The notes under the pieces: model-generated | Database searches by the model: none | What the model was told of the DNA's origin: nothing | What the model saw: the letters and a program-made list of their open reading frames with translations, nothing else | In this document: piece after piece, positions 9,780 through 39,644 of the stretch | How positions within the stretch are numbered: position 1 is the first letter of the stretch | Layout of the letters: each line of letters begins with the position of its first letter | Program-made: the position numbers and the translations under genes | Origin: Oopsacas minuta | Lineage: Eukaryota > Animalia > Porifera | DNA: 64,000 bases | Direction of reading: 5' to 3' | NCBI GenBank assembly: GCA_024704765.1 | Contig: JAKMXF010000365.1 | Coordinates: forward strand, 868,001 to 932,000

Positions 9780-10341
9780 TTAGTTTAGGAAAAAATTTAC
9801 TAGAGTAGATACGTAACATATTTTTGTTATTGTATTATTCAATTAATTTTTCTAGATTTATTTTCAATTAACTTAATGTATTGTAACTTAAGAGGTAATC
9901 AAACCCAGATTTTAAGATTTCCATGAAATTACGAATTTACTCCTCCAAAGTAAATTCCGCTTTCAGAACCAAAAGATAATCTTACTTAACTAGTCAATGG
10001 CACTGGTTACGATAATGTAATATTTAAATAAATGAAACTATCACTTCAATGATGTATGTACGTAGTCAATTGTAATGTGATATAGTTGGGCAAGGTTACA
10101 ATTGTGTTTCAGATTAATATTATTAAATTCTTTCAGTGTAGTTTATAAGAGTTAGATTACTATTTGTTATTAGAGCTATTAAAAGAAAGTACTACAAAAA
10201 ATCAGAAATATTATTAAATTATATTAAAATACCGAAAACAAAAAATGAATAGTTTTCAGACATATAGTTCCAAATAAATATTACATCCATTTTCGTCAAT
10301 GAAACTAATTATCTCCCAATATTTGTGAAAATGTCGACTCT

Positions 10342-13300
10342 CTAGGTAATAAAATTTTTATGGTAGAGATTAAAGGTGTAGAAGGGACTCGAGAGCCAGA
10401 AGTTGTTGGGTGACCAGAAATCCGTCATAGCAGTGGACTTTTGTGGACTGAGTAAAGGTTTGGCATAAGAATGTTGGTTAAAATATAGCTGGTTCATGTC
10501 AGTAATCATTTTGTAAGAAAGTTCTTGTACCTGGTGCTTGTGGGTTGGACATGTGTACTTCTGTGTACTAGTCTCATCTGGAGAAATTTCAGATTTAGTA
10601 GCTATTATTCGTAGCTTGTACGTGCCATGATAGAAGAATATTACATTACATCCAATACTCTGTCTAGACTGTTGTGGTAACTACAAATAAACAAACTATG
10701 TAAAAACTTGATTATACAGTCTCTACGATCTGATTTTGTTCACCCTTATGGCTCAAAAGTTACGTAATGTTGGTAAGGGGGATGGCCTGTCGTAACCTGG
10801 AGCTAATTTCACATTTTATGAAATACAGTAAAACTCATAATTTATAATTCACATGATTGTGAGAATCATGGGGAATACTATATTTGGAGGACATAGTAGC
10901 AGCTTCTCTAATAATTGCACTTATTTTCTCATGATTAGGAATGGATAGAACAGTATATTGTATGAAAATGCACTAGTCCATTACAGTGTAACCTCAATTA
11001 TCCAAACTCCTAACAGGTCCTCTGGCCCCAGTTCATATTCCACTATGTATAAACGACCTCGGTTATCCGAACGATTTTGATTTTTGACAGGTCAGGACTA
11101 GTTCGGATAATAATCTAAGTTTCTCTGTAACAGGCACAGATGAATCAAATAATATAACCTTATCAATTGTCCAACTTGATGAAGGCCATACTGCAGCTTT
11201 CCCTGTTGATTCTGAGTCAATCGAATCAATATTATCTTCATATATCTTCAGTACTACTGATACAGGTTCGATATCTACGTCTAAAATGATGAATGAAATA
11301 TTTAGAAAGTAGTCAGTGGTTAGTCACATTGCCCAAACACTATTTTAGCTGAGCTGAGGTATTTCCGTGTGTTAATAGTTTGATTTGTTAAATAGATTAA
11401 TCGCATTTTGAATTTATCTAATCGTGAATTTCTGAAATCTGAATAAGCTTCAGGCCAGTTCACATTAATCTACAATTCTTATCTATTTCTATAAAATATT
11501 GTGTTGTTTGAAATTAGACATTTTAACGGATTAAAAATGATCACGATTTGTTTATCAATATTCCCTATCTTGAAGTGGTAAGAATATTCCTTAATCAAAT
11601 TATAAATCCCCCCCCCCTTTTTAAATTTTTTTTTTTTGTTTATTGGACTCAAATTAGATAAATCTACAGAATGATATGTATTTCAATATGATGTAATAGT
11701 TTGTACAATTTCTCTATAATATCAAATTCCTTATACAGAGTTCGTCAGTGGCATAGTGCTGCGCACAGGTGGCGCATTGATTAGGACATGTGGCACAAAA
11801 TCGGGGCATGTGATGGCGGATTACCTGGCGCAAGAAAAATACATGCAATAAAGGGTTATATTGTATGTAGGACAAGATGGAATGGTATAGTTTAATTTTA
11901 CCTACCTGAATAATTAGATAGAATTATTACAAGTTGTGTCTGCTGTCCTGTTAGGAACTTAGTCTCATCGTCTGGCAAGATAATGCTGTCATTCACCCGC
12001 AAGTCTGTTAGAATTACAAATGTTAAAATAACCTACTATATTATTAAATGAAGAATGTTATATTGTTATCATCAAATTTACAAATTTTTAAAATTCTCCG
12101 AAAATCTGCCGAAACTTGTTCTCTAAGGTTATTAGGGGTGACCACAATTATTGGGGGAAATTATTTATATCATAATTGCCCCTATTCCTCCTAAATCACT
12201 AATATCCTATAGGAATGCAATCATAATTTTACATAAGTATACAATTGCTGTGTTCATGGCATGAGCTAAAGGAAATCTGGTCATGAGCCATATATTATAC
12301 ACGGATAATTGACAGGTATATAGCCCAGCTATACACCTAAATATAGGAAATTACCAAAACAGATGGGCTCGCTCTTCAGGTTAAGCAGCATGTTGTATGT
12401 AAGTTGAAATCCTTGTAGAGAAGTATCCCCACATCTCACATCGTGTTCATCTAACTATGTGCGTGTGTGTGTAATTAACTGCAAACATTAAATAATGTTA
12501 CAATGCTTACCAGTCTCCAATTTAATTTTATCAAGTTTGAAAGTAATTCAGCATAATCCAGATATTCCTGTTCCTAAAATAGAAGACAGTAGAATCGCGT
12601 TAATATTTACACGAGCGGAATTTCGAAATTTGTACTTATTCGGAGTACGTATTAACCAGAGCAATATCAATTGGAAACAATGGTAGGGACCTTTTTGGTG
12701 TAAATATTCGTTCGTATAATCAGGAAATTCGTATTAACCGTGTTCGTGCTAACGAAGTTAGGTTCTACTGTAGTTAGTTAGAGGGCAGCTTGCTAAACAC
12801 TGATAAAGTGAGGTAAGTTAGCCAGATTATGAAATTTGATTTTAACAATATGTCACTGATAATTCTTGCATTAAGATTTTCGCACCAATTCAGATGTGTA
12901 CGTCTGGATACAAACTAAACCATATAAATTATAGTAACAAATGTAGTAAAGTACTTTTTGGCCAGTCGGATGATTTCAAATATCACTCTGTAAAATATTT
13001 AATTAAGCCACAAGTTATGTACATATGGCGATAGTAAGAGAATTAGAGATAGTGCAAAATAGTTACTTGTATCTTACCTCCCAATTATTGAATTCCACTG
13101 GTTTTGCAAGATGAAACTTCCAAATATCAATTTGTAATCTGAAAAGTGTAATTTGAATTAATCAAATTTCGATGTCAAAACAATATGACGTATTAATTAA
13201 TTAATTAATCGGTACCTTTTGCAACTAGTTGGGAAGAGAGTTACTTCTTTATTACTTTCTAAGTCATCAAGTACACTTTCTAGATGATCAAATACTGATA

Positions 13301-16106
13301 AAGTAATTATTCATGTTAGTTCCCATTGTTTAAATGTTTTATGTAAAGTATCATATTAGAGTTGATTATTTTGGGACTAAGAATCTGTAGATACAGATAA
13401 ATGATATCTACAGCAGATAATCGTTATTACGAACAGTAAGGGACCGTCGAAATTAGGACTTAATTATCCTAAGTTCATTTAACCAAATGATTTTTGTTGA
13501 AAATATTGAACTGGAATTTTACATTTGCTAGAGTAGGTATAACAGTATTAACTGTCTCTATGCGTTAATAATTGTCAAGCAACCTAGCAACAAAAGCAGT
13601 AATATTGCAAAAGAAAAGTATCGACTCACTCTGTTTGATAGAACATGTTAAAATAATAGTGTCTTTAGATAGGTTGAAGACGCTGAAACAGAAAGAACAC
13701 ATACGAGGATTGCTAGAAAATATAGAATTGATCATATTAATGCAGATTAATTATTGCAATATTAACCGAACCCTACTGTCGGGAAATGTGTGATTTATGA
13801 CGTCAAAATGTGAAAATCTCGTTTTTGGTGCGGGAATTGGTTATAACGAAGTGGTAAATTTTAGTGTTTCTTTCCATTACTAACTTCAAACTTCAGCCGT
13901 AATCACTTAACTATACATTTTATCAACGGGATTCGACAAAAAATTGATGATTCAATTTAATCTAACTTATTAATAAAATTAATTCCTAAGAGAAGCAATA
14001 CCCCTGTGTATATGTATATATATATGTATATGTACCTTGGAAAAGGAATTATATCAAAGTAACCGAATACTAGAGAGGGTTTAATTTTGAAAGAAATATT
14101 TCCTGTACATTCTCTGTAGTAGCCTTTTTCATGTGCAAGCTCTCCGCTATACTTAATTTGTATTTCTCCCTCAACAGTACAGTTTTTCGGCTTTTCTGGA
14201 AAAGAAGAGAATTTAGATTGGAATGCAGTGTTGAAAGAGAGTTGAGAAACTGATCTAGTTATTCCACCAGATGAGGGAACAGAGAGAGATGATGCATCAG
14301 GATAGTCATCATGGACAGTGATAGAAGAGCGTTTCGATAATATAGCATTTGCCTTTGGGAACTAGAATACGCAGTATTAGGTAATGATATATTCGATATA
14401 ATAACTGTTACTGTACTTGTCAAAATTCACAAAAAAGTAGTTTGAATATTTGCAATTTTGTCCATAATGAGTGTGATACTCACCGGCTGTTTAGGCAAGT
14501 CTTTTTCCATGATATCCAGAGACTCCCTTGACGTCGTCAAAAGGATTTCTTCTTCCCTGAGATTAGTTACAGAAGAGCTTTCAGCATTAGCTTTGATAAT
14601 ATTGGTTATACTTTTTGTCTTCTTTCCTAATCGATGTGATTCTGGAGTCCTTGCCTCTGGATTATTGGGTGTGTTTCTGCTAGTAGAACCACTTCTGCTT
14701 CTCATTGTCTTCTTCACTGAACTAATAATCCCCTTCTCAACTAAACGATATAAATGGGTGTGTTGAGATACATCCATCTTGTACACATGTGTCATCCATA
14801 CGTACATGATTGGATGAGTGCATGGGTGTATCTCTAATCTCAATACACAAGTGCCTCTACTTAATTATCAACAATACCAAATTCCTACGCACTCAAAATT
14901 CAGTAATGCAAAATTGCAGATTTATTCGTGCCTGAGAGAACAACACCGGATCTAGATCCGCGAAATATTTAGCTTAGTTGAAATCCTATTAGCAATCTTG
15001 GTAATCGATATGTTCATCAATTAAAGGAAAACTATATTTACCTTCATTCAATGAATGTATATTGGGAGCTGTATTTCTATAATGAAAATTCTTCCCTGAT
15101 TTACGTGCTTTTTGAGTGAGTCCATCTTTATCCTGAACAGAAGTACACGTCACTTGATTATGTGTGTCAAATATAGGTAATGAAGTATTTGAAATCGTAG
15201 AAGTAGTTCGTATGTGATCGGGCAATCCTAATCCTCCAATATTGTCACTAACTAATCTATCTTTACTGGAGAGTCCCACTTGTAGAGATATAGGGAGAGC
15301 TCGTGTCGTGTCTGGTGTTAAAGGTACCAGTCTCCCAATCACACTCTTGTCAAAAGAAACTCTCAGATATTCGTCCGCTCCTATCACATTGTATTAACGT
15401 ATAATAGCGAAATGAGTAAATACGTCTTATTACATCAAACTCACCAACTGGCCATTGAAAATTGGCTTCAAGATAAGTTGTAATTCCTTCATTTGCTTCA
15501 ATACTGATTTCATAATCTTCTAACCTATAAATGAAGAATCACATAATATATTGCAGGAATTTTCGACTTGTGATCTGCCGTAGTATATCATACCAAATAT
15601 TTTAAAAATTGGAAGTAACTTGTTACACATTACTAAGCATCACAAAACACATAACCAAGTGTGCGGGCCCGTATGTGCTAGGGTGGTTATAACGGAGCCC
15701 ACATTTACACAGGTATTATATATATATTCGCTCGAATTTTAAAATATATAGGACATGATTCACTAACATTCTAAGAATTTTTCTGAGAAAAATGATAAGT
15801 CAAATTCTATGAAAAATTCTAAGAATTGAGCCAATTTTAAGACTAATTCTTAGAATTGTTTAGAATTTTTGTGAAATAAGGCCTTATAGCTCGATTAATG
15901 ATAAAATTTACAAATTTACATACTTTTCTCCATCAAGAAGTTCAGAAGGGAAGTTGATGGCAGTAGTGAGCATGGGTAAGTAAGGAAGTACATCTACCTC
16001 TAGATATGGTTTATGACTGGGGAAGATTACTTGATGTTCTATTTCAAACAGTTCATAGGAGTAACCTGTAAATAATATGATATAACAAATATAAGGGCAC
16101 AAAAGA

Positions 16107-16175
<69 letters not shown>

Positions 16176-19100
16176 CAGTTTCTGATAATTTGAAAATGAT
16201 TTCAGCTGGGGTTTCATACTGTTGTCTTTATCAGACAAAATCTGTATTGCTTGATTCTCACCTAGTCCATGTTAATATGTTCTCACTCAATAAATGGAAT
16301 AGATTCTTATCAACATTTGTATTTTCCCCTATGTATAGCGTAATTTGGTTACGGCTTTTTGAAAAGTTCGTGAAAATGAATAATTCTTCAACCGAATACG
16401 GCCAGGAAAATATGTGATTTTATGACGTCAAAAAGGTGCTAAAATCTCGTTTTGGGCGGGAATTGGTTAAAATCAAGTGGTTATATTTTGGTGTTCCTTT
16501 TAATTCTTAATACTTCAGCGTGATCGGTTAAATAAGTAACCATGAATTATTCAATTAATTACTAATACACACTAAAAGTGGATATTTAAAATCATTCCAT
16601 AATATTAAATTATAATAATTATATATATATAGTGTATACAAATACTATTATTCTTATTCCTTCTCTATCGTTTAAAATTATGATTAATTCTCAATTTTAA
16701 CTGATAATATAATATTTGCCATTTTCAATTATTTCACCTTATATGGTAATATGGGATCGCTTAATATTAAAATAGAATTCCTAAATTCAATACTACATTC
16801 ACAAATTGTACATGCTTGATTAACTAATTATGACACTAAGAGCGAAAATAATAATAATAAGAGCAGCAAATTAGAGCATAACTCAAACCCTGGTACCAGC
16901 TGAACTACTAACTATTACAATGCTAGAATTGCTGATTATATTAAGTTTTGTGCGTTATAGGCACACACAACATAGCTTCAAATCACAAGCAAGAAAGATT
17001 TCTAGATCTTGCTAATAGCTAGTAGCAATGAGTTCAATACTTGTATCCTGTCCACATTGTATTGCTAAAGTAAGGTATGATAATTTGAATTCTCATATTC
17101 AGAGAGTGCATGGTGGTAACAAGCCTAGAACAGCAGAAGTGCGAGTAGACACAAGTTCAAACAGAAATACAGGCTATCCCACTCAACGCTCTTCCAGATA
17201 CAGAGATTCCACGACAGAGTATCAAAGGAGAGTACCATCTCATCTAGCTTGGAGTTGGGATAAAGGCACCTATGCTAACAGATATGATACCGATGATGTA
17301 GCGAGTATAAAACAAGAAGATTACTACACTACATCAGGCGATATGACTAGAAGGGTTAGCTCACCAGATGTAGTAACAAATGGATTGAATTCACATTGCA
17401 GTAGTGTAACTAGTTTCAGTCAGACATCAGAAATTCCTATCGTATCCGATCAACTAGATTTATCAGATAAAGAGACTAATAAGCCACAAACTAAGAGAAA
17501 AGAATCCCGTAATGATTGGATTGTCTTCTCTACCACAACAGATGTATTTACACAAAGACGTTCTGATGGTTTCATATGTCCTGTAACAAAGTGTAAGAGT
17601 AAATTTATTGAAGTAGAAGAAGTGATACAGCACGCATTTACTGCACATTTCTTAGAGAAATGTCCGTATTGTAAAGGAGTTAATTTCAGACCGCATAGTA
17701 AACTAGGAGATCACATACAACAGGTTCATAAAATTGATAAACAGGACAGATATACTTCTCCAAAAACTTCACCAAAGCAGAGTAGTTCTAATGTTCATAA
17801 TTACAAAATCCCGCCAACTACGAATAATGGAAGCAGAATATCTTCTAGCAAATGTAAACTGGAAACAAATATGAGTAATATAACCGCTGAAAAGACAAAA
17901 GTAAAAGTAAATTCACGAGAAATTCTACCATCAAAAATTCAGCCAAATTCTACAATTAAACCTCCACTAGTAAGCAAAGATATTCCTAAAACTTCACAAT
18001 CCAATTCGTCTAACATTAACAATTCAAGACCTACCCTACAAGCTAACAAGCCGAAAGCAATCGTTCAAAAAACAACGAAAATTACGTCGAAACCTAGCGA
18101 GGTAAAACAAGCACCAAGTGCTCATAATGTTACGTCACAAAAACCTGTTACAACTGTAATAAAACCGGACCCAAAAGTTGTTGAGACAGTAAAATCAAAA
18201 TACCCAAGTAGACCTACTACGCCAAACACAAGTTTACCTACCAGCTGTTTAGTAAACAAATCCGGAGAGACAATTAACACAAAATGCCCTTCAGTACTCA
18301 GCTCTAATAAACAAAACGTTTCATCTGCGACAGATGTACGTGATAGGAATGTTGAAACAGCCCACAACCTCCAGTTAAAAAAGGTTAGTATTGGAAGTAG
18401 TAATACAGATGTCGAATTTATAAATGCATTCAGAGATCCCAAATTAGAAAAAGATACAAATTTCAAGTTTGTCTATACAGGTGACCTCGTAGGATATAGT
18501 CTCAATATTATTTAATTATATTCAAGAATAACTAAATATAACAAATTTATTACTTATTTGAGTTTGAATCAAGAACTTAGTTTTTAGTTCCAATAACAGT
18601 ATTGTCACGTGTTCTGTGTTCACATTTGATTATTTGTACAGTCACCTCCGCTTAATTGGGACACGTCTCCAGGGACGGAATCATCTTCGTTCAAGTTAAT
18701 ACTAAATATTTTCGATTAATCGGGACAAACTCTGGTAATGGAATGAAAATTATTAACTCAATCAAGACGAAATTTCAATAGAGTGGTAACTTGCTTTAGG
18801 GGACTCTGTAACTGAGAAAATAGAAGAATGCTGCTCTTTAGTATCATTATTAGAAAATCTTGGTTAATTGGGAACTCCGCTAATCGGGACAAAAGGGCTG
18901 GAACCTATATGTCCCGATTAAGCGCGGAGTTGACTGTAGATAGGATATATAGTGAAACCTTAACTGCGTATTTCTAATAATAGTATAATACGTAAAGTAT
19001 TTGCGGTATTGAAGTGTTTCACCACACACTAATTGAAGTGTTATAATACAAACCCTTTTCTTTTCTGTTAGTAATTCTCTTATAACTCAATTACTGAAAT

Positions 19101-28100: not shown

Positions 28101-31100
28101 TCTGAATATGGGTAGACATGTGAATATTAAATTTGTTGTATTCAAAAGAATGATCGGGTGCTATAGGACATTTCAAACTAGGTACATGTTGTTTGAAATG
28201 TTTATTAGGTTTTGTATTTGGTAGTTTTTCATTACACAAAGGACACGTGACAGTTGCATTATGCGATTTTCTACACTCGTTGGTATGATTAGAGAATGTA
28301 CCCATGGATACAATTGAGGAACAGAGAGGACATATAACTTTAGTATGCATCTTCATATGTTTAGCAAACTTCTTTTTATTTTTAGAAATAGCTTTGGTAC
28401 AAATAGGACAATGTAATGGGTTTATAGTAGGAGGTGTTGGCTCGGGCTCAGGATCAAGAATATTGTCAGGAACTGAACTGGAGTGTCGAGTAGCTACGTG
28501 ATCATCCAAAACGCAAGGATTCATAAAAACATGACACATCGGACATTCTACTATCTGGTGACTCGTGCCAGAATGCCAAGCTGCCATTTGAAGGTTACGA
28601 AAGATAAATAGCTAATAAATATCAATTTATATTACTTATAGAATTTTCTGAAAAACTTATTGCATATATCAATATAAGTAATATGAGCAGAGTATTGCGG
28701 TTATGTTGTAACTGTTGAGGAGTTAAACAATATGGAAGTAATGAATTATTAATTCAATGAATCTTTGAGTATGTTAGTTTATTCTAAGGACTTTCTACTT
28801 CAGTATCACAGCAGTTAGAGTAAGGGAAGAGAATAACTAGAATGTCCTATATACAATTTACTATACAGGTATAGCGATAAGTAATTAGTTTACAAACCCA
28901 TATACAGATAGAATACAAAAAAGTGTTGTTTGTGATTAAGTAAACCTTTGAACAAAATTCGTAGTTGTTCTAAAAGGTAACGAATCCTCCAAATAGTAGC
29001 AAATACAACTAGTATGAACAGGAAATTGTATAAAAGTTAATAACGAGACAGGTCTAGAAATCAGAGCAAGATGGTATCTCAGAAAGTAATAATTGTGATG
29101 GGATGTGTGTCCATAACAGTACACTTAATGAGTGGGATACTACTGTTATTCACAGCTACAACTGGAATGTCAATTCTAAGTGGTTTAGCAGTGTATAATT
29201 CTATGGATATCGAGGTACCGGGAGAATTTAACTTCCTAGGAGCAGAGGTTGTACTAACAATAATATTTTACACACTGCTAATAATTCTAGCTGTGATGGG
29301 ATCTATATTCGCTATGCTAGATTCTAAATTCCACAGAGCTGCTATAGCCCTGCTGGTTACCTCACAAATACTAATAGTAATTGTAATGGTGTTGAATATT
29401 ATAGCAATTGGAGTATTCAATACGGAGAAATCTAGAGAGACTTTTGATGTACAGAAATACTACGTTCTCAACATCTTAATAGTATTCTATCTTGCTGGGG
29501 TGATGGTTTACGATACTGTCTTTATCGTGATGAAAATGTGTAGCACAAGATCAGATAAAGTCAATAATTAGCACAACAACACCTAACATATTTCCACGCG
29601 AAAAGGTACTATAAATATTATCAACCTGTTAAACTGATCAAATATGTCTTTATCAGTAAAAATATAATGTTATTTTGTATAATTTATACTAAATGTAATA
29701 AAACGCAATAAACATGTATGTCCAGATTTAACTGTATATAGTAACCAGAGTGGACCTACCATGAGCCAATGGGTCATGGTTGGCCATAGGTGACCCATGG
29801 TCCAGGTAAACTTTGATTTATAACTGTGCATTAGTTAAACCAGTCAACTAGTCCCTAGTCACCTCAGCATCGAGGGGCGTAAAATCCTCTTATTAACAGC
29901 TGGAGGCGAGTGTATAACTAGTACAGGGAAAGTCTGGATTCACAAGCAATAAATACTCTAAGACAAGTACTCAAACGGTAGCCCGCGGGCCATTCGCTGT
30001 CGCACACGGATAATTCACTTGTTTTCATTATTCATATATCTATACAGTAAATTGACGTGCTTCAATCGTCAGATAATAATTGTTTTTTCTAAACATCATA
30101 TAGAAATAATTACGGTTACTCTACCAATGCATTAATGTTCCTAGAATGAATAAAGTATTTGGTAACTATAGTTTGCATTTACGAATTCTATCAATTATTA
30201 GAGCTTCACAAGTATAATGTAGGAGGCAGAACCTAAATTGATAGTATAGCTTGAAAATTGATTAAACTAAAGCCAGAGGCAATCTATGATTTGTGGCCCG
30301 TAAGGCGGAGCCTAATTTTTAAAGTGGCCAGTAGATTTAAAAGTTTGAGCACCCCTGCTCTAAAACAACATCGAGTGGGTGTAAAATAGGTAAGTTGACT
30401 GAAATAAGAGGTGCGAGTTAACCAAAATAGTACGAGTTGACTGGCTCCCGTCAAATCAAATGAAAGTAAATCAAAGTGTGTAATAATGAATAAATAATCT
30501 ATTTAATACGTAATTATTTTGAGTAAGTTTATTAAAAAATGAATTTATTAGGCACTTTGCAAGGCCAAGAAGTCCAACATTTCTTCGACGACATTTAGCA
30601 ATGTTAATAAGATAATTTTATTACTTTCTTATGACAGCAACAGGAGAAAGATAAACTAAAAATATCCCATAAATTAATTAAGCATAAAGATATGCGAGAA
30701 GGAAGTATATTGCAACCTCGATATTATAGAAAATAAGGACATGCTAAGGGTGATGTTATTATGATTAAGTATTCTTTGTAGAAATACGTAGTTGTGTATA
30801 AAAGGTATGGATCCTCTAAATAGTGCCAAATATGAACAGTAATTTGTATAAAGGTCACTTAACGAGACTGGAGTATATATAGAGAGCAAGATGGTATCTC
30901 AGAAAATTAATATTCGTCATGAAATGTGTATCCATAAAGCTACACTTAATGAGTAGTATACTGGTGATATTAAAAGCTACGACTGGGTGCAAATCCTGAA
31001 CGTTATAGTTCTAATAAACACTCCTCTTAGTGCTAAAGTACTAGGAGAATTCAACTTCCTAGGAGCAGAGGTCGTACTCACACTAATATTCTACACACTG

Positions 31101-34100
31101 CTAATAATTCTAGCTGTAATGGATCTATATTCGCTATAGATCTACTGATCACCTCACAGATACTGATAGTAATCGTAATCAATTTAAATATTGCCGCAAT
31201 TGGAGTATTCCATACTGGGAAACAACTAGTACTATATTCACAATATCATTATTGTATTATATCTTGCTGGAGTGATGGTTTACGAGATTGTCTTTATCGC
31301 GATGAAAATGTGTAGCAAAAGATCAGATGCAAGTTCAGATACAGTCATAATTAGCATAACAAATGATTTCCCATAGATTACTTTAATATAAATAATAACC
31401 AAGTTACCAACTGATCAAATATGTATTTATCTGTGGGATTGTAATACCTATTATTTATGTAGAGGAATAAAATCAAACTATAAACTATGTCAATCAATAT
31501 TTCAACTAATTGAACACTCTATGAATTGTAAGTTCTATGAGAAAGGTATGCTGGGGACAGAAATTATCGAAGCTTTGCGAATTACTACATCACCATTTAT
31601 CATAGATAATCGTCATCATCAAATAGAGAAGTTAGCTCACAATCTGAGTTTGAGTCTGGAGAGATTGATATCAGAGGATTAGTAGAGAGCTGTTTATCGT
31701 TAGTAGAAATAGTTGGTTTGTTTGCAGGTAGTTTCCTCTTTGATACAGGACCTTGATTGATAGGAGGTTTAAGAGCTAATGCAGGAAATTCACTATCTGA
31801 CAGACTGATAGTATTAGATACTTTAGAAACAGGCTTAGAGGTAGTAATATTCAAAGTTTCCATTGCATGTGACTGTACTGGCATTTGTTTTGGATGTATA
31901 GCTATCTCAACCTTATGAACTGAAGCTGTAGCTGTACTCAACTCTTGGGATACCTTCTTCTGACAAGATACAGCATGTCTAGCAATTGAATCACACTTAA
32001 ACTTCTGTTTACAAGAGGGACAAGATATTTTAAGAGTTGCATGGAAGCTATGAATGTGATTATTGTTCTTATTTGCTAATGAAGTACCGCACAAAGGACA
32101 TGTGTCTTGATTAGGACGTTTTTTCAGACATTTAATGACATGGTCATCAAAATTCGTCTCAGAAATATCCCTTGCATGGCAGAGAGGGCAGGCATGTTTA
32201 ATGTGAACTTTCTCAATGTGTTTCTGTAGAATTCCATCTGTTGAACACACAGTTGTGCAGAATATGCACTTGAATTGTATTACAGTTTTAACAGGGTTGT
32301 CTACTGCTTTTTTCCGTTGTGAATTAGGATTAGCAATAAATGGGTTTGACTGACTGCGTTTATTGTATATTTTAATACAATTCTTTATATGTCCTGCAAA
32401 CGTATCAAATGTGAATGATTTCTCACACCCAGGAATAGAACATGTAAGTTTAGATATATGCTTAATTTTGACATGTCTCGTACTGCCGTCAGGAGATCCA
32501 CAAATGCTACATGGAAACTGATCAAACGTGTAAATAACCATACACTCAATAAGATGGGACCCTAGGTCATGAAGAGGATAATCGTTGGAGCATCTGGGAC
32601 AGCAAAATATTGCATGCAATTTCACATGGCAATCACGTACAAATTGAGGCATTATCTTTCTACAAAGAGGACATTGCCATCTGATTTTCATTGGATCGGT
32701 TACGGGCTGAGCTACAACTGATTTCACCTTAGGGGTTATAGGGTTTAGATTGGGTTGTAATGGCGCTAGAGATTCTGCCATGAAGTGAATTTAACTATAA
32801 ATGAATTAGTGTGTGAAGCAAAGAAATTCTGGTGTACTGATTGTCTTGCAATATCTTGTAATTATGGCAAAAGATTAAATACTATACAGAAAAGCAAATA
32901 ATCATCATGTATGATCCATATTCCATTACATACACAAACTGAATGTATATATTGAAAATGGGTCAATTGCATATATGAATCAATGTGTAGAGAAAATCAA
33001 TAATTATAATTCCAGAAATGAATGAATCTTCTGAATACCCCAAAAAATACAATTCCAAAATCTCAAAATCTCAAAATCTCTGTCTTCACAAACCATGCAA
33101 TTGATAATATAACATCAAGGGAATTAATTAATTCTGAGACCCAATAGATTGTTAATAGAAACTACCTGCATTCCAGCAGGAATATTCCTACACTCAGCGA
33201 TATGATTCTCCAGTAACACATCTCTACACTGATAATTACAGAAGAGACAAGTTACTTGAGATTCATATCTTGTTTGTACAGTATTCGCATAACTGCGATT
33301 TGAAAGAGAAGCAGAACTAATTTGTTTCCGAGCTGCAGGAATATCCTCTTCCGAATAAGAACTCTCCTCAGAAGATTCAATCTCAAGTTGTTGGTACAGC
33401 TGGATAACTTCAGGGTCTAGACTAGGATGGTCTTGGAACAGCTGTGCACTCATTACACTTAGTTTAGCACACTTATTAACATGTTTGCTAAAGTTATTAG
33501 GACCATAACTATCCTGACAGAAAGGACAGGTCAGCTGCCGATGAGTACGATGTATGTGAGTTGAGATTTCTCTCACGCTATGACACTTCGTTTCAGAGCA
33601 ATAAGGACACAGATAAGTAGGCCGTCCTTTAACTTGCTTAGCTCCGTATCTCCCCAAACACTCCTCTAGATGTACTTTGAATGAACTGTGAGCAAGTTGT
33701 TTGCTGCAGATAGGACACTTATGTGTGATATGATTCTCAGTCATATGTCGTCCCATCATTCTAAGAGGACAGTCATCGTTACAAATAGGACAGCTGATCT
33801 TCTGACCCATACTAACATAAGGAAAGGAGACTAGGTCCTCTGGGTATCCTCCCTTCTTACCCCTCTTCTTATTATCTGTAGGCAGGAGAACGTAGTCCGA
33901 GTCTGAGGGGTCAATGAAAGGAGCGAAGAACGGCTTAGACTGATGATGACTGCCAGAATAATTGCCTTTACACCTAGCATTAGTTTCATAGTCATAAATC
34001 AATTCTTCATAATCTGAGCTGTCATCTGTCAGAGATTCAGAATCTGATGGCGTGTCAAAATCATCTTCAAACTCTCTAAACTTTTGGAACACCCCCTGAA

Positions 34101-37100
34101 GCAGAGGAGACTGACTGGCACCAGGAGAACTATTCCTTACACTACATTGATTCAAATGTGAAGTTACTCGCTTTGCTCCTAAAGTCCCTGAACAAATAGG
34201 ACAGCATAGGGTGAGATGAGATACAGTGAGATGCTTAGCTATATTTGTAACAGAATCTTGTTTCTTACATGCGTTGCACTTCATAACACCAGCACTACTA
34301 GGTGTTACATTCTTGGGTATACACTTGTTGAGGAGATGAGTAAACAGACCAGACTTATTAAATCTACTCTTACAGAAAGGACATAGAATCTTAAAATGAG
34401 ATTTAACATGACTTCTCAGCTTCTTATCATGCATGTACGTGTGGCAAATAGGACAGCTGTGGTTAGACTGGATATCAGTCTGAAATAAATCAGAGTATTT
34501 GTAGGATTTATTGACAGCTGATGAGTAGCTAGTTAGGTAGGGATCTGGCGGATCACGTAGTTGTTGGTATTGTTTGGTTCGCTCCTTATCATGATGCTTC
34601 TTCCTCAAATGCTGCTCAATATATTGGAATCTATATCGACAGAATGGACATGGAACTGTCAACTTGGGACAAGCATGTAAGAGATGGGTTTCCATAGAGC
34701 TAATAGATATAGATGCGAGACAATGTGGACACGTTCCGGGTGATATCTGCTGACCAGGTTTTGGCCTCGCAGGACAGAATTGATTGAGATGTCTTGTCAA
34801 GCTGGCAGGTTTGACATATGCATTGCATAAATGACATCTCACATTTTTAGGAGGAGAACTGGTTGCTGGTAAGTTTGTGGCCATAATAAATGAATCTCAA
34901 ATATTCTAGTACAATTCAGTTACTCCATAATCTTCATAAAGATATTAGTTATTATGGGAAGCGTAGAAGACACTTTAATAATATTCAGTGTCATGTTACA
35001 AATGTGATGACTAAGTCAGTCAGTAGATGATATTCGTAGTAAATAATAAAATCGTACTTGTAAGTATAAATATAGCAAAAGATATATCAAGATTGCAAAC
35101 TAAAATATAATAATAGGGCATAAAGAAATATGTAAAGACAAACCTAATATCTTTAGACATCCTTCTTGTATTGGCTTGCAAGGAAGATCGAATGAATGAG
35201 AATCACAAAATGGAGGAAGGTAGACACCGGTTTTAGACAACTCACATTCTGGACCGGTTGTTATCAATCTCTGTAGAAAGAAGAATATTAGTCACAAAGT
35301 TTATAAATCGTTAATATTACCAAATAAAGACCGACGTATCATTCAAAGCACCTGGTTACAAAATTATTTAATATATTTATCAAATGTTATAGCTACAGCA
35401 AGTAAGGGAGGATTTCAATAACTACAATGCACTACAAAAGTCACAATTTGGCACGATCAATTCAAACATACTGCTGGTACATAAGTATGTTAAATACATC
35501 TATTGCTTAGGCTAAATTATATTTATTCATATGTAGGTTATAAAAACATCATATACAATTCCCGATGATGTTCATATGCCTGACATCCACAGTCGGGGAT
35601 TATCTACGTGTTTGGCGGGTACCTAAAAGTGCCAGTTTAGCAGCAATGAAAGACACAAAGTGGTGACCATGAGACCCAAGTTTGTACAGGATCAATTGGA
35701 TACAGGCGAAAAAACTGCCATCCAAGGGAGAGTTCATACAAGAAAATCTGCCACCAGTTCCGGTCAGACATTCCTTAAACCCCTGCATTAACTGTGTTAA
35801 CAAATACGTAAGCAATTAAACATACTCACTCACCATGTTAGCAATATTAAGGTCGATTGGTAGAAAGTTAGAAACTGTAACATTTGTAGGACACGTGTGA
35901 TGCTGAATCCAGAATACTACAAACATAGGGAATAGGAAAATAATAATACTACTATATCAAGGTCATCAACAAACTTAAATAATCGGCACAGGGAATTTCT
36001 ACATAGATTGATTCTCGGAGGCTCATCAATCACATGGCCACGACAAACTTGTCCTCTGTCTACACTACTTACGACCCTACCAATAATAAGCATCTAGTAT
36101 ATGTACTCAATACTAACCGTGTGTAGAAGAAGAGTTTTTAGAAGATATCTTATCTGCAGCACTCTTCACTTCTAGATTAAACTTAGGGAGAAGGTGAGGG
36201 AGTAAAGGGCTCGGTCTGAAACAGCTAAAAATAACATAAAGAAAGAATATCATAGCCTATGATAATACGAATGTATTAATCCAACAATCTTGTTTATTAA
36301 TATTTGATGAATATCATCGCAGGGAGTGAAATGACTTTTCTACATTTCAAACAATCCAAGAATAAAACTGAAAAATCAATCGCTCACTTCTCATAACATT
36401 AGTAATTCGCACAATTAGGAGATCATAGTGTTGGCAAAAGGCAGATAAACATCAGTTTTAGACAAAATGTGTTGTTACACACTCTTAATCATACTATTGT
36501 CCCAAACAATGTAATCATGCTCCTAAAGCAGCATCCAGTACTCCTAAATAATACCCTCACTATTCCACTATAATTACTAACCATACTCTTGGAATTAAAG
36601 AGAGTTGATATTTGTAAGAATGCTGCAGGTTTTCTTTCTTAATAATTTCTATCCTCTTCTTATAGCGATTAAATAAGTTCTTAACCTGATCAGTGTGCAT
36701 GTAAGGACTGTAAGTATTCAGAAGCATGTGTAGATATCTAAATAATTAATACAGTAATTAATAATATTAAGTAATATACAGTGGTAGTGTCAGTCACAAA
36801 CGGGCCTATGGTAACGGGGAACTTCTGGAAACAGAGTGGAAAATAAATAGAGCGAATTAATATATATAACATTAACTTTTAAGAACAACGCAAATAATTA
36901 TTACCTCACCGAAATGTGAGAGATTCCTTCTTAGTTCTTCTACAAATATTAAACATGAGATATAAGATCTGGGACTGGAGGAGTGGCCAGCCTCTTTCCT
37001 TATTAGCTAGATACAAAAGGTTAATATTTAAAATATGATAAGCGAAGTCAATTGAGTTAGTAGGTAATAATTACATAAAGGAGTTCTCTAACCAGCAACC

Positions 37101-39644
37101 TAGGGTGCTAGGAGATTTGTTATAGCAAGCTAAGTTGTTATTTAGAAACTCCTTATAAAACATTACTATAAGTAAATTGACGCGTTTAGTTGTACATTAT
37201 ATTACTTACTAGTTTGAATAGAACCATTCCTCATATCCAGATTATATCCAGGAAGAGCTAGCTCTAACATTTTGTAAGCCTGAATAAAGAACTGTGAAAA
37301 TATCATTCGTTATAATTATTACAATATACATACTTTGTTAGCATACTCTAGTGTAGTCTCCTTCCCAGAACATGTGACTGCCCATTTGTAGTAGAGGCCA
37401 GCTTGTCTATAGAATCCCATCTCTCTATATACCTCTGCTATTCCGGATAGTAACTCCATCTAATGAGGAGATAACTTATCATTAATTAATGCTATAAGGT
37501 ATTGTATTAATAATTGTATTAGAAGCATATACCTTGAGGACTCCATCCAAACTACAATGTACATCCATTATCTTCCGTAGTTGAGTATGTGCATCTATTT
37601 TTCTCTAAAATGAACAATAAACAATAACAAACATAAATAAATGAGAACAATAAGATCTCATATAAATAGAATGCACTAGAGCTATTCAGAAATAGAGATA
37701 GTCATTGGAATTATAGTGTGATATACTCAACTAAATACAATTCTACAACGTTACCTTCTGTTCCAATAGATATCTAGCTAGCTTCAGTAGAGCCTCCATC
37801 TGTGGGATACTACCAGAGATACCAGCCTAGAATAGAAAAGTATAAATAGAAGAACAAAACTCATATACACACATTATATCAACCTTATGATAATACGTAA
37901 TACTCTCAGTAAAGTTTGATCCAATAGCATCTCTCTTCAACTCAATAGGTTTAGATAAATCTGGCATTAATGCATTGTTAATAGCTTCAACACCAAACGA
38001 GCTTTTATCTCCTATAGAAGTAGTATCAGACATATCATCTGTCATTCTCTCCATATCATCAACAGCTAGCATCTCTACACTATCTCTTAAGTTGAATAGA
38101 CTTCCTGAGAACGGGGCAGTAACGTCAGAAGCAGGAGCTATTAAAGTTGTTGTTTTGAGATCTTTCAAGTCTCTAATGTAAGCAGTAGCAGCTAGTCCCT
38201 CACAGGTAGCTCCTAGCCAAATCCAGTCCTGAGCAGCTCTCAGCTGTTCAGCAGCTGTTGTATAGTAGTGTAAAGCCTCTTCATAATGGCCACACTGAAG
38301 AGTTAGGTCTGCTATGTGTTTGAATACACGAGCCTTGTATCTCTTCACTAGAATTCTAAATTAATTAATTATTTTAATAAACAGCTGGTAATTATTAATA
38401 AGAATAAAGTCTATACTTTTTGTCTTTAATTTCTGTGTCTGCTTCTTCAAACGGACTTTTGAGTTTATTTATTGAATCAAAATTCTCAGTTTGTAGCAAT
38501 TTGATTTGAGATTGTCTCCGAGATTCAAGAATAGAGTTTAGAACCAAAGTGAAACAAGACAACACCTAAATATACATAAATATACATAAATATACATAAA
38601 TATACATAAATATACATAAATATCAAAATAAATATCAAAATAAATATCAACTATTTAGTGATATAAGATATCCTACCTCCTCCAATTTGTTATAGTTAAT
38701 AAAATCGTCTAAAGAATCATCACGAGCCATATCAGATATATTTATTAGTACATACTCAATACCAGAAGAGTTCAGACGAGAGAATGCTTCCTCTAAGTTT
38801 TGTTTAAAAGAGGGTCCTGTGTCTAGAAAGTCAGGAGTAGAGGTATGAGTTGTTGGAGAGTATAACTCCATCTCCGTAGTACAGAATACTAGACACATAG
38901 AGTGACATATAGCTCCCTTGTAGCAGTTAGAGATTGAGTAGACTGTCTCGTGAATAGATTGTACCTGATACAAGCACACGATATTAACAAATTACGGTCG
39001 GAGTTTTACGCTTGTAATGAAAAGGAACACCAAAATATTACCACTTCGTGTTAACCAATTCCCTCACCAAAAAACGAGATTTTAGCAACTTTTTGACGTC
39101 ATAAAATCACACATTTTCTCGGCCGTATTCGGTTAATATACGTATACGTACTTCGAATCGAATCCTATTAATTTGGATACAATAGCTCTGTTCTAGAATA
39201 TTCGGCACTATCAAGGTGAGTTACAAATTTTTGGAAATCTTATTTATTAATATCAAAAGTTTTATCAATATGTTAGTAAAACGGTTCAATATCATTACGT
39301 ACTATCTATCTAGCTACTATTCTAACCTGAGATAGCTCTGAGCATTGTGCTACACCCACAAGACCAGACAGCTGCTTATGAGACATAAACTTGTTATATT
39401 TAACAGAATAAGCCCACGGAGCTAAGTTCCTCTCGAAATTAAACAGAGCCCTGACAGGGCCAAGTAGACCTGGATTGGAGGACAGACCCTTAGTAGGCAG
39501 GATGAGAAGGGAGGAGTTATCCCTCAGGAAATTATAAATCCTGTGATAGAGTTCTCCTGATATATCAGATATAGGATACACGAACACTTGGAGATGTCCA
39601 AGATCTTTTATATGCGACTTCACATCTAACAGCGAACCAGACAT
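10342..39644 (-). CDS. TRAPPC9: TRAPP II subunit TRAPPC9/NIBP/Trs120; roughly 25-30 exons; 3' end approximate
   Basis: Manually translated exons are colinear with human TRAPPC9: 39327-39644 (N-terminus); 38677-38964; ~37880-38348 KARVFKHIADLTLQCG..QDWIWLGATCEGL; 35834-35916 FWIQHHTCPTNVTVSNFLPIDLNIANM; 35144-35270 RLITTGPECE..PIQEGCLKILG; 15924-16065 YSYELFEIEH..EVDVLPYLPML; ~15046-15523 LEDYEIS..PLTPDTTRALPISLQV; exon ending 14036 IKYSGELAHEKGYYREC..IKPSLVFG; ~11900-12005 DLRVND..VIILSNYS; ~11160-11280; 10342-10680 LPQQSRQSIGCNVIFFYHGTYKL. The splice junctions checked for these exons are GT-AG with matching phases; a few small exons were not resolved. Confidence 0.88.
10984..11127. mobile_element. 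Tc1/mariner-type MITE in a TRAPPC9 intron
   Basis: Imperfect TIRs CAGTGTAACCTCAATTATCCAAACT and (rc) CAGAGAAACTTAGATTATTATCCGAACT, with TA on both sides. Confidence 0.6.
12587..12770. mobile_element. Tc1/mariner-type MITE in a TRAPPC9 intron
   Basis: CAGTAGAATC... and ...GGTTCTACTG|TA termini with internal CGTATTAACC repeats. A related end fragment is at about 47857-47880. Confidence 0.55.
13766..13906. mobile_element. ~140-bp piggyBac-like MITE, copy 1
   Basis: TTAA|CCGAA...CCGTAATCAC|TTAA. Core TTATGACGTCAAAA..AAATCTCGTTTTTGG..GGGAATTGGTT is shared with 16392-16527 and 38988-39132. Confidence 0.7.
16107..16174. repeat. (ATT)~22 microsatellite
   Basis: Direct reading. Lies about 40 nt inside the 3' end of the giant intron. 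Confidence 0.95.
16392..16527. mobile_element. piggyBac-like MITE, copy 2
   Basis: TCAA|CCGAATACGG...CGTGATCGG|TTAA with the same core as copies 1 and 3. Confidence 0.7.
17028..18515 (+). CDS. Nested zinc-finger protein ZF1 (3 C2H2-type fingers, S/T/K/P-rich), 495 aa
   Basis: CPHC..HIQRVH, CPVTKC..HAFTAH and CPYC..HIQQVH. Intronless ORF. Confidence 0.8.
   Translation: MSSILVSCPHCIAKVRYDNLNSHIQRVHGGNKPRTAEVRVDTSSNRNTGYPTQRSSRYRDSTTEYQRRVPSHLAWSWDKGTYANRYDTDDVASIKQEDYYTTSGDMTRRVSSPDVVTNGLNSHCSSVTSFSQTSEIPIVSDQLDLSDKETNKPQTKRKESRNDWIVFSTTTDVFTQRRSDGFICPVTKCKSKFIEVEEVIQHAFTAHFLEKCPYCKGVNFRPHSKLGDHIQQVHKIDKQDRYTSPKTSPKQSSSNVHNYKIPPTTNNGSRISSSKCKLETNMSNITAEKTKVKVNSREILPSKIQPNSTIKPPLVSKDIPKTSQSNSSNINNSRPTLQANKPKAIVQKTTKITSKPSEVKQAPSAHNVTSQKPVTTVIKPDPKVVETVKSKYPSRPTTPNTSLPTSCLVNKSGETINTKCPSVLSSNKQNVSSATDVRDRNVETAHNLQLKKVSIGSSNTDVEFINAFRDPKLEKDTNFKFVYTGDLVGYSLNII
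18639..18936. mobile_element. Tc1/mariner-type MITE
   Basis: TA|CAGTCACCTCCGCTTAATTGGGAC ... GTCCCGATTAAGCGCGGAGTTGACTG|TA with internal TAATCGGGAC repeats. Confidence 0.8.
19127..20818 (+). CDS. Nested zinc-finger protein ZF2 (acidic N-terminus, R/S/K-rich middle, 8 alternating C2H2/C2HC fingers)
   Basis: Example pair: CPFCEIKIPMNNLSEHVLTH followed by CPLCNKDIPQKEAELHMESC. First ATG at 19127; the ORF track starts at a TTG at 19115. Confidence 0.85.
   Translation: MEPSHSHSYSTHQQDISPMECKPSKDFLLKMDSPCHLSPVRFKIGEDDCGDKEMGANEYYLGYDDESDDCDWDTEIPVDQNTEVASPVFIDFCQNSDAEEISTNESNFDQTNYAVICSPLGSEICSYFSPDAVSLNSIENGLIVIEDIGKTTKEVGISEDGMEKNKPEIASSKVECENIGSIISPIQKCSPTIPFFVSSFDYNHKVGKLDVKNTIIDYFSCESQQNNSVLPCDNSPSMYSSPRKSNSRKRRKKGKRRSSSIHSTNSYHSERKSTTRKNHSISASSESSYKRSVRYFRTRSQSYNKHSTKELIGFPITRKDRRAQHSPIESTRENKIACKCPECEYTSSSKEIIDHYCTAHFMLSCPSCDLPIQEPYFLQHCKNCKSLKETLNCPSCQLTCTNNSLLSLAMHIKFSHPIKKCVGCSEFFVPQKFANHAKNCFFEPKNSCICPFCEIKIPMNNLSEHVLTHPIAECPLCNKDIPQKEAELHMESCYLEKVNDCEESVLGTLFNCPICRQRYSFEKMPEHIIKNHLSLNCVFCYMVMSLEEMRGHVVVCSQKKSNE
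20982..21213 (+). mobile_element. Non-autonomous Helitron-like element between ZF2 and ZF3
   Basis: a|TCTATATTATTAGATCTTAATTTGTGTGTGTCTATCTGTC 5' end like the 5414-5518 and 5845 copies. GC-rich 3' segment ending CTCG. Confidence 0.5.
21832..21945 (-). repeat. 21-nt coding tandem repeat (TNSKPLP)n in ZF3
   Basis: Translation LTNSKSSLTNSKPLPTNSKPLPTNSKRLPTNSKPV. Confidence 0.85.
22288..22632 (-). repeat. 21-nt coding minisatellite giving an RS-rich heptad (SRSDRSY)n, with a 63-nt higher-order duplication
   Basis: Plus-strand unit about CTACTATA(A/C)GACCTATCAGAT repeated about 16 times. Confidence 0.85.
23867..24396. mobile_element. 530-bp MITE with ~80-bp TIRs, 80 bp upstream of the ZF3 start codon
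   Basis: TATATGCTAAGGGAGATGTTGACATTTGGAACA..GAGATGTTAACATTATTGGTTT and its reverse complement at about 24321-24396, flanked by TA. Confidence 0.8.
24899..26016 (-). pseudogene. Nested ZF4: decayed zinc-finger + G-patch gene
   Basis: Three ORF pieces. Frameshifts at about 25685 (ACAC slip), 25375 (restoring one base gives CPIPTCCKQLSIVNFSKHYFLH) and 25245. G-patch YQGIGLILMTKMGYIPGQGLGAHGDEVLKPVEA. Confidence 0.75.
26920..28587 (-). CDS. Nested zinc-finger protein ZF5 (~13 C2H2/C2HC fingers), 555 aa
   Basis: Repeated CPxC-x11-13-H-x3-4-H/C. Ends VVNLPDIVGLRIN. Confidence 0.87.
   Translation of the reverse strand: MAAWHSGTSHQIVECPMCHVFMNPCVLDDHVATRHSSSVPDNILDPEPEPTPPTINPLHCPICTKAISKNKKKFAKHMKMHTKVICPLCSSIVSMGTFSNHTNECRKSHNATVTCPLCNEKLPNTKPNKHFKQHVPSLKCPIAPDHSFEYNKFNIHMSTHIQKLVTEQELSSVEHFLKSPHFPNSENSNSIPQTQGVYESSYSQHVFFEKNTNPEDLNRPVQTPNKNPDKSTDKLDVKSRLYALISHQCPICNGSINEGKFESHLQTCLQTQTIPFKCPRCSRKFSDLTTTVRHIHRNHITKLHTCHGCHNTIPCFTIRTHPIQCLSKAPIQLTKQQKIILNSSGKITCPICQKQCKKTQLSSHMLLHAIFQCQSCGWSTEKLCEFTPHLYSCVESSRPSCPFCFNHVSKTRFSEHVLTEHSYLCPICYTAMSKNEFTFHGLLCVVIHNVSVDVPKNMPKTSTNKPKTTPTTPTPSKSTPTPPKSTPTIQSKLKTSYPTNSTAIPTSKFSCPFCQFSEIEDFQLIRSHLLSCEKIQDNSNLHVVNLPDIVGLRIN
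29071..29571 (+). CDS. Nested four-transmembrane protein, 166 aa, family not recognised
   Basis: Four long hydrophobic segments. An adjacent degenerate duplicate supports it as a real gene. Confidence 0.7.
   Translation: MVSQKVIIVMGCVSITVHLMSGILLLFTATTGMSILSGLAVYNSMDIEVPGEFNFLGAEVVLTIIFYTLLIILAVMGSIFAMLDSKFHRAAIALLVTSQILIVIVMVLNIIAIGVFNTEKSRETFDVQKYYVLNILIVFYLAGVMVYDTVFIVMKMCSTRSDKVNN
29964..30357. mobile_element. hAT (Charlie-like) MITE
   Basis: Right end AAGTTTGAGCACCCCTG, degenerate left end CAAGTACTCAAAC, 8-bp TSD CTCTAAGA / CTCTAAAA. Confidence 0.65.
30891..31354 (+). pseudogene. Frameshifted duplicate of the 4-TM gene 29071-29571
   Basis: Shares AGAGCAAGATGGTATCTCAGAAA, GGAGAATT(T/C)AACTTCCTAGGAGCAGAGGT and TATCTTGCTGG(G/A)GTGATGGTTTACGA, but has indels and internal deletions. 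Confidence 0.85.
31600..32781 (-). CDS. Nested zinc-finger protein ZF6 (four C2H2+C2HC pairs), 393 aa
   Basis: Example pairs: CPLC..HVKLH-AIF-CCPRC..HLIEC and CIFC..HIEKVH-IKHA-CPLC..HVIKC. Confidence 0.87.
   Translation of the reverse strand: MAESLAPLQPNLNPITPKVKSVVAQPVTDPMKIRWQCPLCRKIMPQFVRDCHVKLHAIFCCPRCSNDYPLHDLGSHLIECMVIYTFDQFPCSICGSPDGSTRHVKIKHISKLTCSIPGCEKSFTFDTFAGHIKNCIKIYNKRSQSNPFIANPNSQRKKAVDNPVKTVIQFKCIFCTTVCSTDGILQKHIEKVHIKHACPLCHARDISETNFDDHVIKCLKKRPNQDTCPLCGTSLANKNNNHIHSFHATLKISCPSCKQKFKCDSIARHAVSCQKKVSQELSTATASVHKVEIAIHPKQMPVQSHAMETLNITTSKPVSKVSNTISLSDSEFPALALKPPINQGPVSKRKLPANKPTISTNDKQLSTNPLISISPDSNSDCELTSLFDDDDYL
33124..34884 (-). CDS. Nested zinc-finger protein ZF7 (~12 C2H2/C2HC fingers, acidic spacers), 586 aa
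   Basis: Example pair: CPICNDDCPLRMMGRHMTENH-ITHK-CPICSKQLAHSSFKVHLEEC. Ends VVSINNLLGLRIN. Confidence 0.87.
   Translation of the reverse strand: MATNLPATSSPPKNVRCHLCNAYVKPASLTRHLNQFCPARPKPGQQISPGTCPHCLASISISSMETHLLHACPKLTVPCPFCRYRFQYIEQHLRKKHHDKERTKQYQQLRDPPDPYLTSYSSAVNKSYKYSDLFQTDIQSNHSCPICHTYMHDKKLRSHVKSHFKILCPFCKSRFNKSGLFTHLLNKCIPKNVTPSSAGVMKCNACKKQDSVTNIAKHLTVSHLTLCCPICSGTLGAKRVTSHLNQCSVRNSSPGASQSPLLQGVFQKFREFEDDFDTPSDSESLTDDSSDYEELIYDYETNARCKGNYSGSHHQSKPFFAPFIDPSDSDYVLLPTDNKKRGKKGGYPEDLVSFPYVSMGQKISCPICNDDCPLRMMGRHMTENHITHKCPICSKQLAHSSFKVHLEECLGRYGAKQVKGRPTYLCPYCSETKCHSVREISTHIHRTHRQLTCPFCQDSYGPNNFSKHVNKCAKLSVMSAQLFQDHPSLDPEVIQLYQQLEIESSEESSYSEEDIPAARKQISSASLSNRSYANTVQTRYESQVTCLFCNYQCRDVLLENHIAECRNIPAGMQVVSINNLLGLRIN
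38567..38650. repeat. 10-11-bp minisatellite (TAAATATACA)n filling TRAPPC9 intron 2
   Basis: Direct reading. Confidence 0.9.
38988..39132. mobile_element. piggyBac-like MITE, copy 3 (inverted), in TRAPPC9 intron 1
   Basis: TTAA|CAAATTACGG...CCGTATTCGG|TTAA, with the reverse complement of the shared core. Confidence 0.75.

Follow-up and report, generated by a model that had tools for sequence, protein, structure and literature searches.

Several independent genes can occupy one intron and leave their host correctly spliced, as in Drosophila dunce and in human NF1, where the residents are EVI2A, EVI2B and OMG. The host considered here is TRAPPC9 (Trs120), a large subunit specific to TRAPPII. 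Nested genes are reported to be abundant in glass sponges, many of them conserved and missed by automatic annotation; in the searched text of Francis et al. (2023; PMC10282587), the curated gene set of Aphrocallistes vastus holds 2432 of them (12.4%) and the annotation of Oopsacas minuta 83. The mean O. minuta intron is given as 341 bp in the searched text of Santini et al. (2023; PMC10280926). In mammals, an intron of TRAPPC9 itself hosts the imprinted lncRNA PEG13, as described in excerpts of PMC3986935 and PMC9596773.

Here we have analyzed a window of 64,000 nt of O. minuta DNA (assembly GCA_024704765.1, contig JAKMXF010000365.1, positions 868,001 to 932,000, forward strand) in which one intron of TRAPPC9, intron 13, is ~56x as long as the 341-bp mean quoted for the species (PMC10280926, searched text). 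In all likelihood the locus is a single, intact and expressed TRAPPC9, and its intron 13 owes its growth to 19 kb to the lineage-specific zinc-finger genes, arrayed in tandem, and the small 4-TM gene that it contains. Like the nests of A. vastus (PMC10282587), this one consists of complete, mostly single-exon genes within an intron of a conserved host in a compact genome; its layout is kept between hexactinellids, and arrangements of this kind are known to trouble automatic annotation. What sets it apart is that one lineage-specific zinc-finger family occupies a single TRAPPC9 intron as a whole tandem array (nine loci over 19 kb); this locus is not described in the searched text of either genome paper (PMC10282587, PMC10280926).

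The sponge TRAPPC9 protein is very divergent, and we therefore built a profile of our own from 16 full-length TRAPPC9-Trs120 proteins recovered in a library-wide HMMER search (four of the 16 were checked for Pfam PF08626 membership, and all four match) and scored it against every stop-to-stop fragment of the window. On the minus strand, colinear and complementary matches were obtained, with profile positions 76-677 falling on 39398-35127 and positions 692-1141 on 16018-10564. The joined 1411-aa model matches the same profile with an E-value of 4.6e-113 in two blocks, at profile positions 77-716 and 826-1139; the first of these corresponds to model residues 84-761 and runs uninterrupted across the intron 13 junction at residue 721. 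With profile positions in order throughout, the first-pass annotation, which had read 39644-35144 and 16065-10342 as two halves colinear with TRAPPC9, was correct on this point.

In Pfam searches with single exons, the cut-off was passed by exon 4 only (38355-37869), the largest exon of the gene, which matches PF08626 at 40.1 bits (gathering score 24.7, E 1.1e-10, profile 256-309). Exon 13 gives a weak match to the same family (profile 722-769, E 0.21), and the exons of the C-terminal half, which are short and divergent, gave no Pfam match when searched singly; against our own profile, exon 18 of that half reaches an E-value of 1.6e-8 by itself. Single distant TRAPPC9 proteins produced tblastn matches that were colinear but weak, and a PDB sequence search with exon 4 returned a weak match to the yeast Trs120 chains (PDB 7e2c; E 0.04) and otherwise TPR designs only. 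No annotated protein containing exon 4 was found in the protein libraries, at best a weak hint that automated annotation would render the gene as two fragments, as the first-pass annotation expected. The open reading frame of this exon did, at 63-82% identity, identify five relatives in ENA assemblies, each related assembly holding one locus type.

Exons were chained from coding conservation with three of the relatives together with splice signals, yielding a gene on the minus strand at 10342..39644, with an ATG-to-stop span of 29,303 nt (stop codon at 10342-10344), 26 exons, a 4236-nt CDS encoding 1411 aa, no internal stops and GT-AG ends at every intron. The N-terminal half (35144..39644, profile positions 76-677) comprises exons 1-5 at 39644-39318, 38964-38677, 38565-38417, 38355-37869 and 37826-37755, exons 6-10 at 37604-37533, 37459-37334, 37279-37210, 37006-36910 and 36737-36582, and exons 11-13 at 36224-36118, 35916-35834 and 35270-35144. 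The C-terminal half (10342..16065, profile positions 692-1141) comprises exons 14-18 at 16065-15924, 15524-15445, 15380-15042, 14740-14484 and 14361-14036, exons 19-23 at 13712-13630, 13279-13216, 13138-13078, 12573-12511 and 12454-12355, and exons 24-26 at 12004-11906, 11280-11159 and 10680-10342. Boundaries in the N-terminal half were drawn from conservation only, with exons 10-12 (the 36.7-35.8 kb region) set by hand; those in the C-terminal half were refined with RNA joints. Intron 13 (16066..35143, minus strand) measures 19,078 nt, and the remaining 24 introns of the gene 42-625 nt, in a window that is AT-rich (GC of 29-43%).

Two short interspersed repeats lie in introns of the C-terminal half, at 13780-13885 and 12650-12760; sequencing depth over both is 10-20x that of their surroundings in all four runs, and dozens of contigs end there in differing overhangs. 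A gene with a Ribosomal_S7 domain (Pfam PF00177; 40159-40635) precedes the TRAPPC9 ATG by about 500 nt on the same strand, and this neighbourhood is kept in all five relatives.

All nine nested loci fall wholly within 16066-35143. As the first-pass annotation had counted them, they are seven zinc-finger loci, one 4-TM gene and one degenerate copy of the latter, distributed over both strands; about 5-6 of the nine are on the strand of the host, and five are intact long ORFs with orthologues in relatives. Closest to the donor, 259 nt downstream of it and on the host strand, is the zinc-finger gene Z1 (33124..34884, minus strand, 586 aa; Pfam zf-Di19, E 3e-11), which shares 48% identity, along the full length, with its orthologue in ERZ20067936. 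Roughly 65 nt upstream of the Z1 ATG (~34945-34960; columns 190-200 of alignment A1), the motif CCCATAAT is invariant in four genomes, among which the intergenic DNA around it is otherwise unalignable; CCCATAAT may act as a promoter or processing signal of Z1. Further in lies Z2 (31600..32781, minus strand, 393 aa), with an orthologue 45% identical. The 4-TM gene (29071..29571, plus strand) encodes a 166-aa protein with four hydrophobic segments in a hydropathy scan, for which a Pfam search found no family; its orthologue is 54% identical and likewise lies opposite to the host strand. The degenerate copy of this gene (30901..31328, plus strand) survives as two pieces in different frames, 35 nt apart, to which tblastn aligns residues 4-32 (62% identity) and 44-162 (44% identity) of the 166-aa protein with shifted frames.

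Two of the remaining zinc-finger loci have interrupted reading frames. Beyond Z3 (26920..28587, minus strand, 555 aa; Pfam zf-Di19, E 7e-13), a zinc-finger/G-patch locus (24899..26016, minus strand; Pfam G-patch, E 1.6e-7) contains a single in-frame TAA at 25340-25342, between its zinc-finger and G-patch parts, and in relatives it is an uninterrupted ORF of 521-524 aa; the locus may have become a pseudogene recently, the stop may be read through, or the TAA may be a sequencing error. The Z4/Z5 locus (21289..23786, minus strand) consists of ORFs of 564 and 305 aa that lie in different frames and overlap by 115 nt, both matching one 983-aa ORF in ERZ20067936. Near the frame change is a tandem repeat of eight 42-nt units (22297-22629) that encodes an RS/SY-rich tail, and the change could stem from a frameshift through repeat length or from faulty assembly. 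On the acceptor side, the plus strand carries Z6 (19115..20818, 567 aa; orthologue 38% identical) and Z7 (17028..18515, 495 aa), the ATG end of the latter (17028) lying 962 nt from the acceptor; the Z7 orthologue is opposite to the host in relatives as well.

The two splice sites that enclose these genes are both phase 1 and on the minus strand, and both were found as the first-pass annotation had placed them. At the donor (35137..35144), the last exon letter is the G at 35144, and gtttgt opens the intron at 35143; at the acceptor (16063..16072), the final intron letters are ttacag, up to 16066, and GT TAC opens the exon at 16065, an (ATT)n microsatellite (16107-16174) lying just upstream. Exon 13 ends with CTA AAG ATA TTA G and exon 14 opens with GT TAC TCC, such that joining them restores a Gly codon in LKILG|YSYELF. 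In the alignment of the joined protein, the profile motif ilGys sits exactly on the junction, with no residue missing or extra.

Indeed, in a contig from X4, a public run, bases 16065 and 35144 are directly adjacent. The contig extends 126 nt beyond 16067, and the first 30 letters of this extension occur once in the window, at 35146-35175; its alignment stops at 16067 rather than at 16065 because the letters CT (plus strand) are common to the end of the intron and the end of the exon, and the overhang together with these two shared letters means that the contig reads exon 13 followed by exon 14. The donor at 35144 is thus joined to the acceptor at 16065 in the pre-mRNA, rebuilding the split Gly codon within a conserved TRAPPC9 motif, and the contig supplies the junction-spanning sequence that the first-pass annotation named as a check. 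Support for this junction comes from one contig of one run. The library type of X4 is not on record, and the run search lists no run recorded as RNA; that X4 holds spliced RNA follows from nine intron-skipping joints with CT..AC ends (GT..AG on the gene strand) on 10098-16097, where X1 and X3, from the same sample, have no such joints, and from the contrast in X4 depth between exons (~450-1900) and introns (25-58). X4 also contains 53% of the words sampled from a stretch with exons over about half of its length. Two more introns of the C-terminal half appear as X4 overhangs, mapped to 10680|11159 and 12004|12355, bringing those seen in spliced contigs to 11 of the 12 internal introns of this half. 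Contigs were mapped on 10098-16097, and as contigs they show neither abundance nor all 26 exons in one molecule.

Ordinary cis-splicing probably makes this junction, from a transcript running through the same-strand nested loci, and the nested genes are probably separate transcription units. About 5-6 same-strand loci, presumably with poly(A) sites, would then lie in the path of the host polymerase. A bolder reading, which we consider unlikely, is an operon inside an intron, in which the same-strand zinc-finger loci would not be independent genes but would be cut from the TRAPPC9 precursor; alternatively, TRAPPC9 mRNA might itself be trans-spliced from two transcripts. Zinc-finger mRNAs would in the former case be released from the 29-kb precursor by spliced-leader trans-splicing and polyadenylation; if this were so, each precursor could yield either TRAPPC9 or nested-gene mRNA, and expression of the two would be coupled.

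Trans-splicing of the host on its own, for which mod(mdg4) of Drosophila provides an example of an mRNA made in this way, would have the two halves transcribed separately, the donor at 35144 and the acceptor at 16065 to which it is joined then belonging to different molecules, and would place a promoter for the C-terminal half within the gene-filled interval or at its end. The junction contig fits cis- and trans-splicing equally, the same-strand loci between the halves could end host transcripts, and spliced-leader machinery has been reported in glass sponges, with a leader of ~37 nt (PMC10282587, searched text). We nonetheless regard this route as very improbable: there is no evidence for a promoter or 5’ exon belonging to the C-terminal half, the only exon among the overhangs listed at the acceptor is that of the N-terminal half, animals routinely splice in cis over 19 kb, and glass sponges commonly have hosts whose splicing spans nested genes (PMC10282587). 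Cis-splicing of one long TRAPPC9 transcript is accordingly the reading that we carry forward.

Related genomes offer a second view of the junction, one in which both halves of TRAPPC9 are conserved exon by exon. The C-terminal halves of the relatives were reached by walking along contigs, and searches with the last exon and exon 16 gave three usable matches. The orthologous intron measures 16,567 nt in ERZ25072740, where both junction exons lie within one locus, 17,477 nt in ERZ25069837 and 25,910 nt in ERZ20067936, the most distant relative. ERZ25072730 and ERZ25766962, which were reached on the donor side only, share this donor and the zinc-finger genes that come after it. The donor reads ...TA G|gt in all five relatives and the acceptor ag|GT TAY in all three in which it was reached, with phase unchanged, and coding similarity ends exactly at the donor and begins again exactly at the acceptor. 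Conservation of this kind shows selection on the two halves as a single reading frame.

The same observations bear on whether TRAPPC9 has split into two genes, one for an N-terminal and one for a C-terminal polypeptide, the junction being a rare read-through product. The break does fall between broad protein regions (profile ~680 of 1158), and many genes lie between the halves, but this history is highly improbable in view of how the two ends are built. No start codon opens the C-terminal half, whose first in-frame Met lies 31 residues in, and the frame past the donor runs in each species into an unconserved tail of its own that soon meets a stop. Furthermore, the junction splits a Gly codon inside the conserved ilGys motif, donor, acceptor and phase are kept in the three relatives with both sites (the donor in two more), and a spliced contig carrying the junction exists. 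An assembly artefact, or relic halves of a gene intact elsewhere, is barely credible, with DNA contigs mapped on 10098-16097, since both intron ends and the same gene order recur in three independent assemblies (the donor side in two more), both halves are open and conserved with the C-terminal half and the junction in spliced RNA, and each related assembly has a single type of exon-4 locus. The claim of the first-pass annotation that one TRAPPC9 is split by a ~19-kb intron of nested loci therefore stands, on the X4 contig, on three relatives with both sites and on two seen from the donor side; its orthologous introns of 16.6, 17.5 and 25.9 kb hold orthologous nested genes.

For an intact TRAPPC9 with a single enlarged intron, the relatives also give an age. 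In ERZ20067936, the order is RPL6e, the Ribosomal_S7-domain gene, the N-terminal half of TRAPPC9, 13 called ORFs (mostly zinc-finger) and the C-terminal half, and the nested genes are orthologous to those of the window and in the same order. The gene-filled intron is thus older than the split of at least four related genomes, and probably older than that of all six. Orthologues of the nested genes in ERZ20067936 are 27-54% identical, far below the TRAPPC9 exons, and array content differs between the two genomes, with nine loci in the window against 13 called ORFs and one locus inverted. The inverted locus is Z6, which is opposite to the host in the window and on the host strand in ERZ20067936 (merged position 35444-37033); the difference in strand means that a single gene was inverted inside the intron in one lineage. 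The array is old, and its content turns over while the host splice sites stay fixed. That the host gene acts as a shelter for an expanding family, as proposed in the first-pass annotation, would be a further step, and no result here points to protection or favour by the intron.

Two side observations concern individual relatives. ERZ25069837 carries an extra gene, encoding a 523-aa zf-TRAF protein on the opposite strand (L010:4344-5915), inside another TRAPPC9 intron; this intron lies between the orthologues of exons 11 and 12, and its counterpart in the window is only 201 nt long. ERZ25766962 contains two bacterial-looking ORFs (L012:1-2186), for a DUF362 protein and a 4Fe-4S ferredoxin-domain protein, which adjoin sponge spectrin/CH-domain genes on a 453-kb contig and could represent horizontal transfer or a chimeric contig.

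These results provide a corrected model of an essential trafficking gene, RNA-supported in its C-terminal half and at the junction, at a locus where gene callers would likely break the host or miss the nested genes. Claims about gene content in glass sponges are affected more widely, as published nested-gene counts differ ~30-fold between annotations. The locus is also a clean comparative case, in which members of a tandem family are born, lost and inverted within one intron that spans 16.6-25.9 kb in four genomes, and it is well suited to asking how, in a compact genome, polymerase gets past several genes that lie on the strand being transcribed.

As in dunce and NF1, the TRAPPC9 intron holds several genes and the host is spliced across them. 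The genes within those two introns are unrelated to one another, and those of NF1 are on the opposite strand to their host; unlike them, the TRAPPC9 loci are mostly paralogues, about 5-6 of the nine on the strand of the host. The likeness to mammalian TRAPPC9 is that an orthologous host has a nested transcription unit in an intron; in excerpts of PMC3986935 and PMC9596773, however, PEG13 is single, non-coding and imprinted and lies in a very large gene, and the sponge nest and PEG13 are almost certainly independent events. Set beside the nested genes already published for glass sponges, the TRAPPC9 nest forms no new category of arrangement and is a large and solid example of one that is known.
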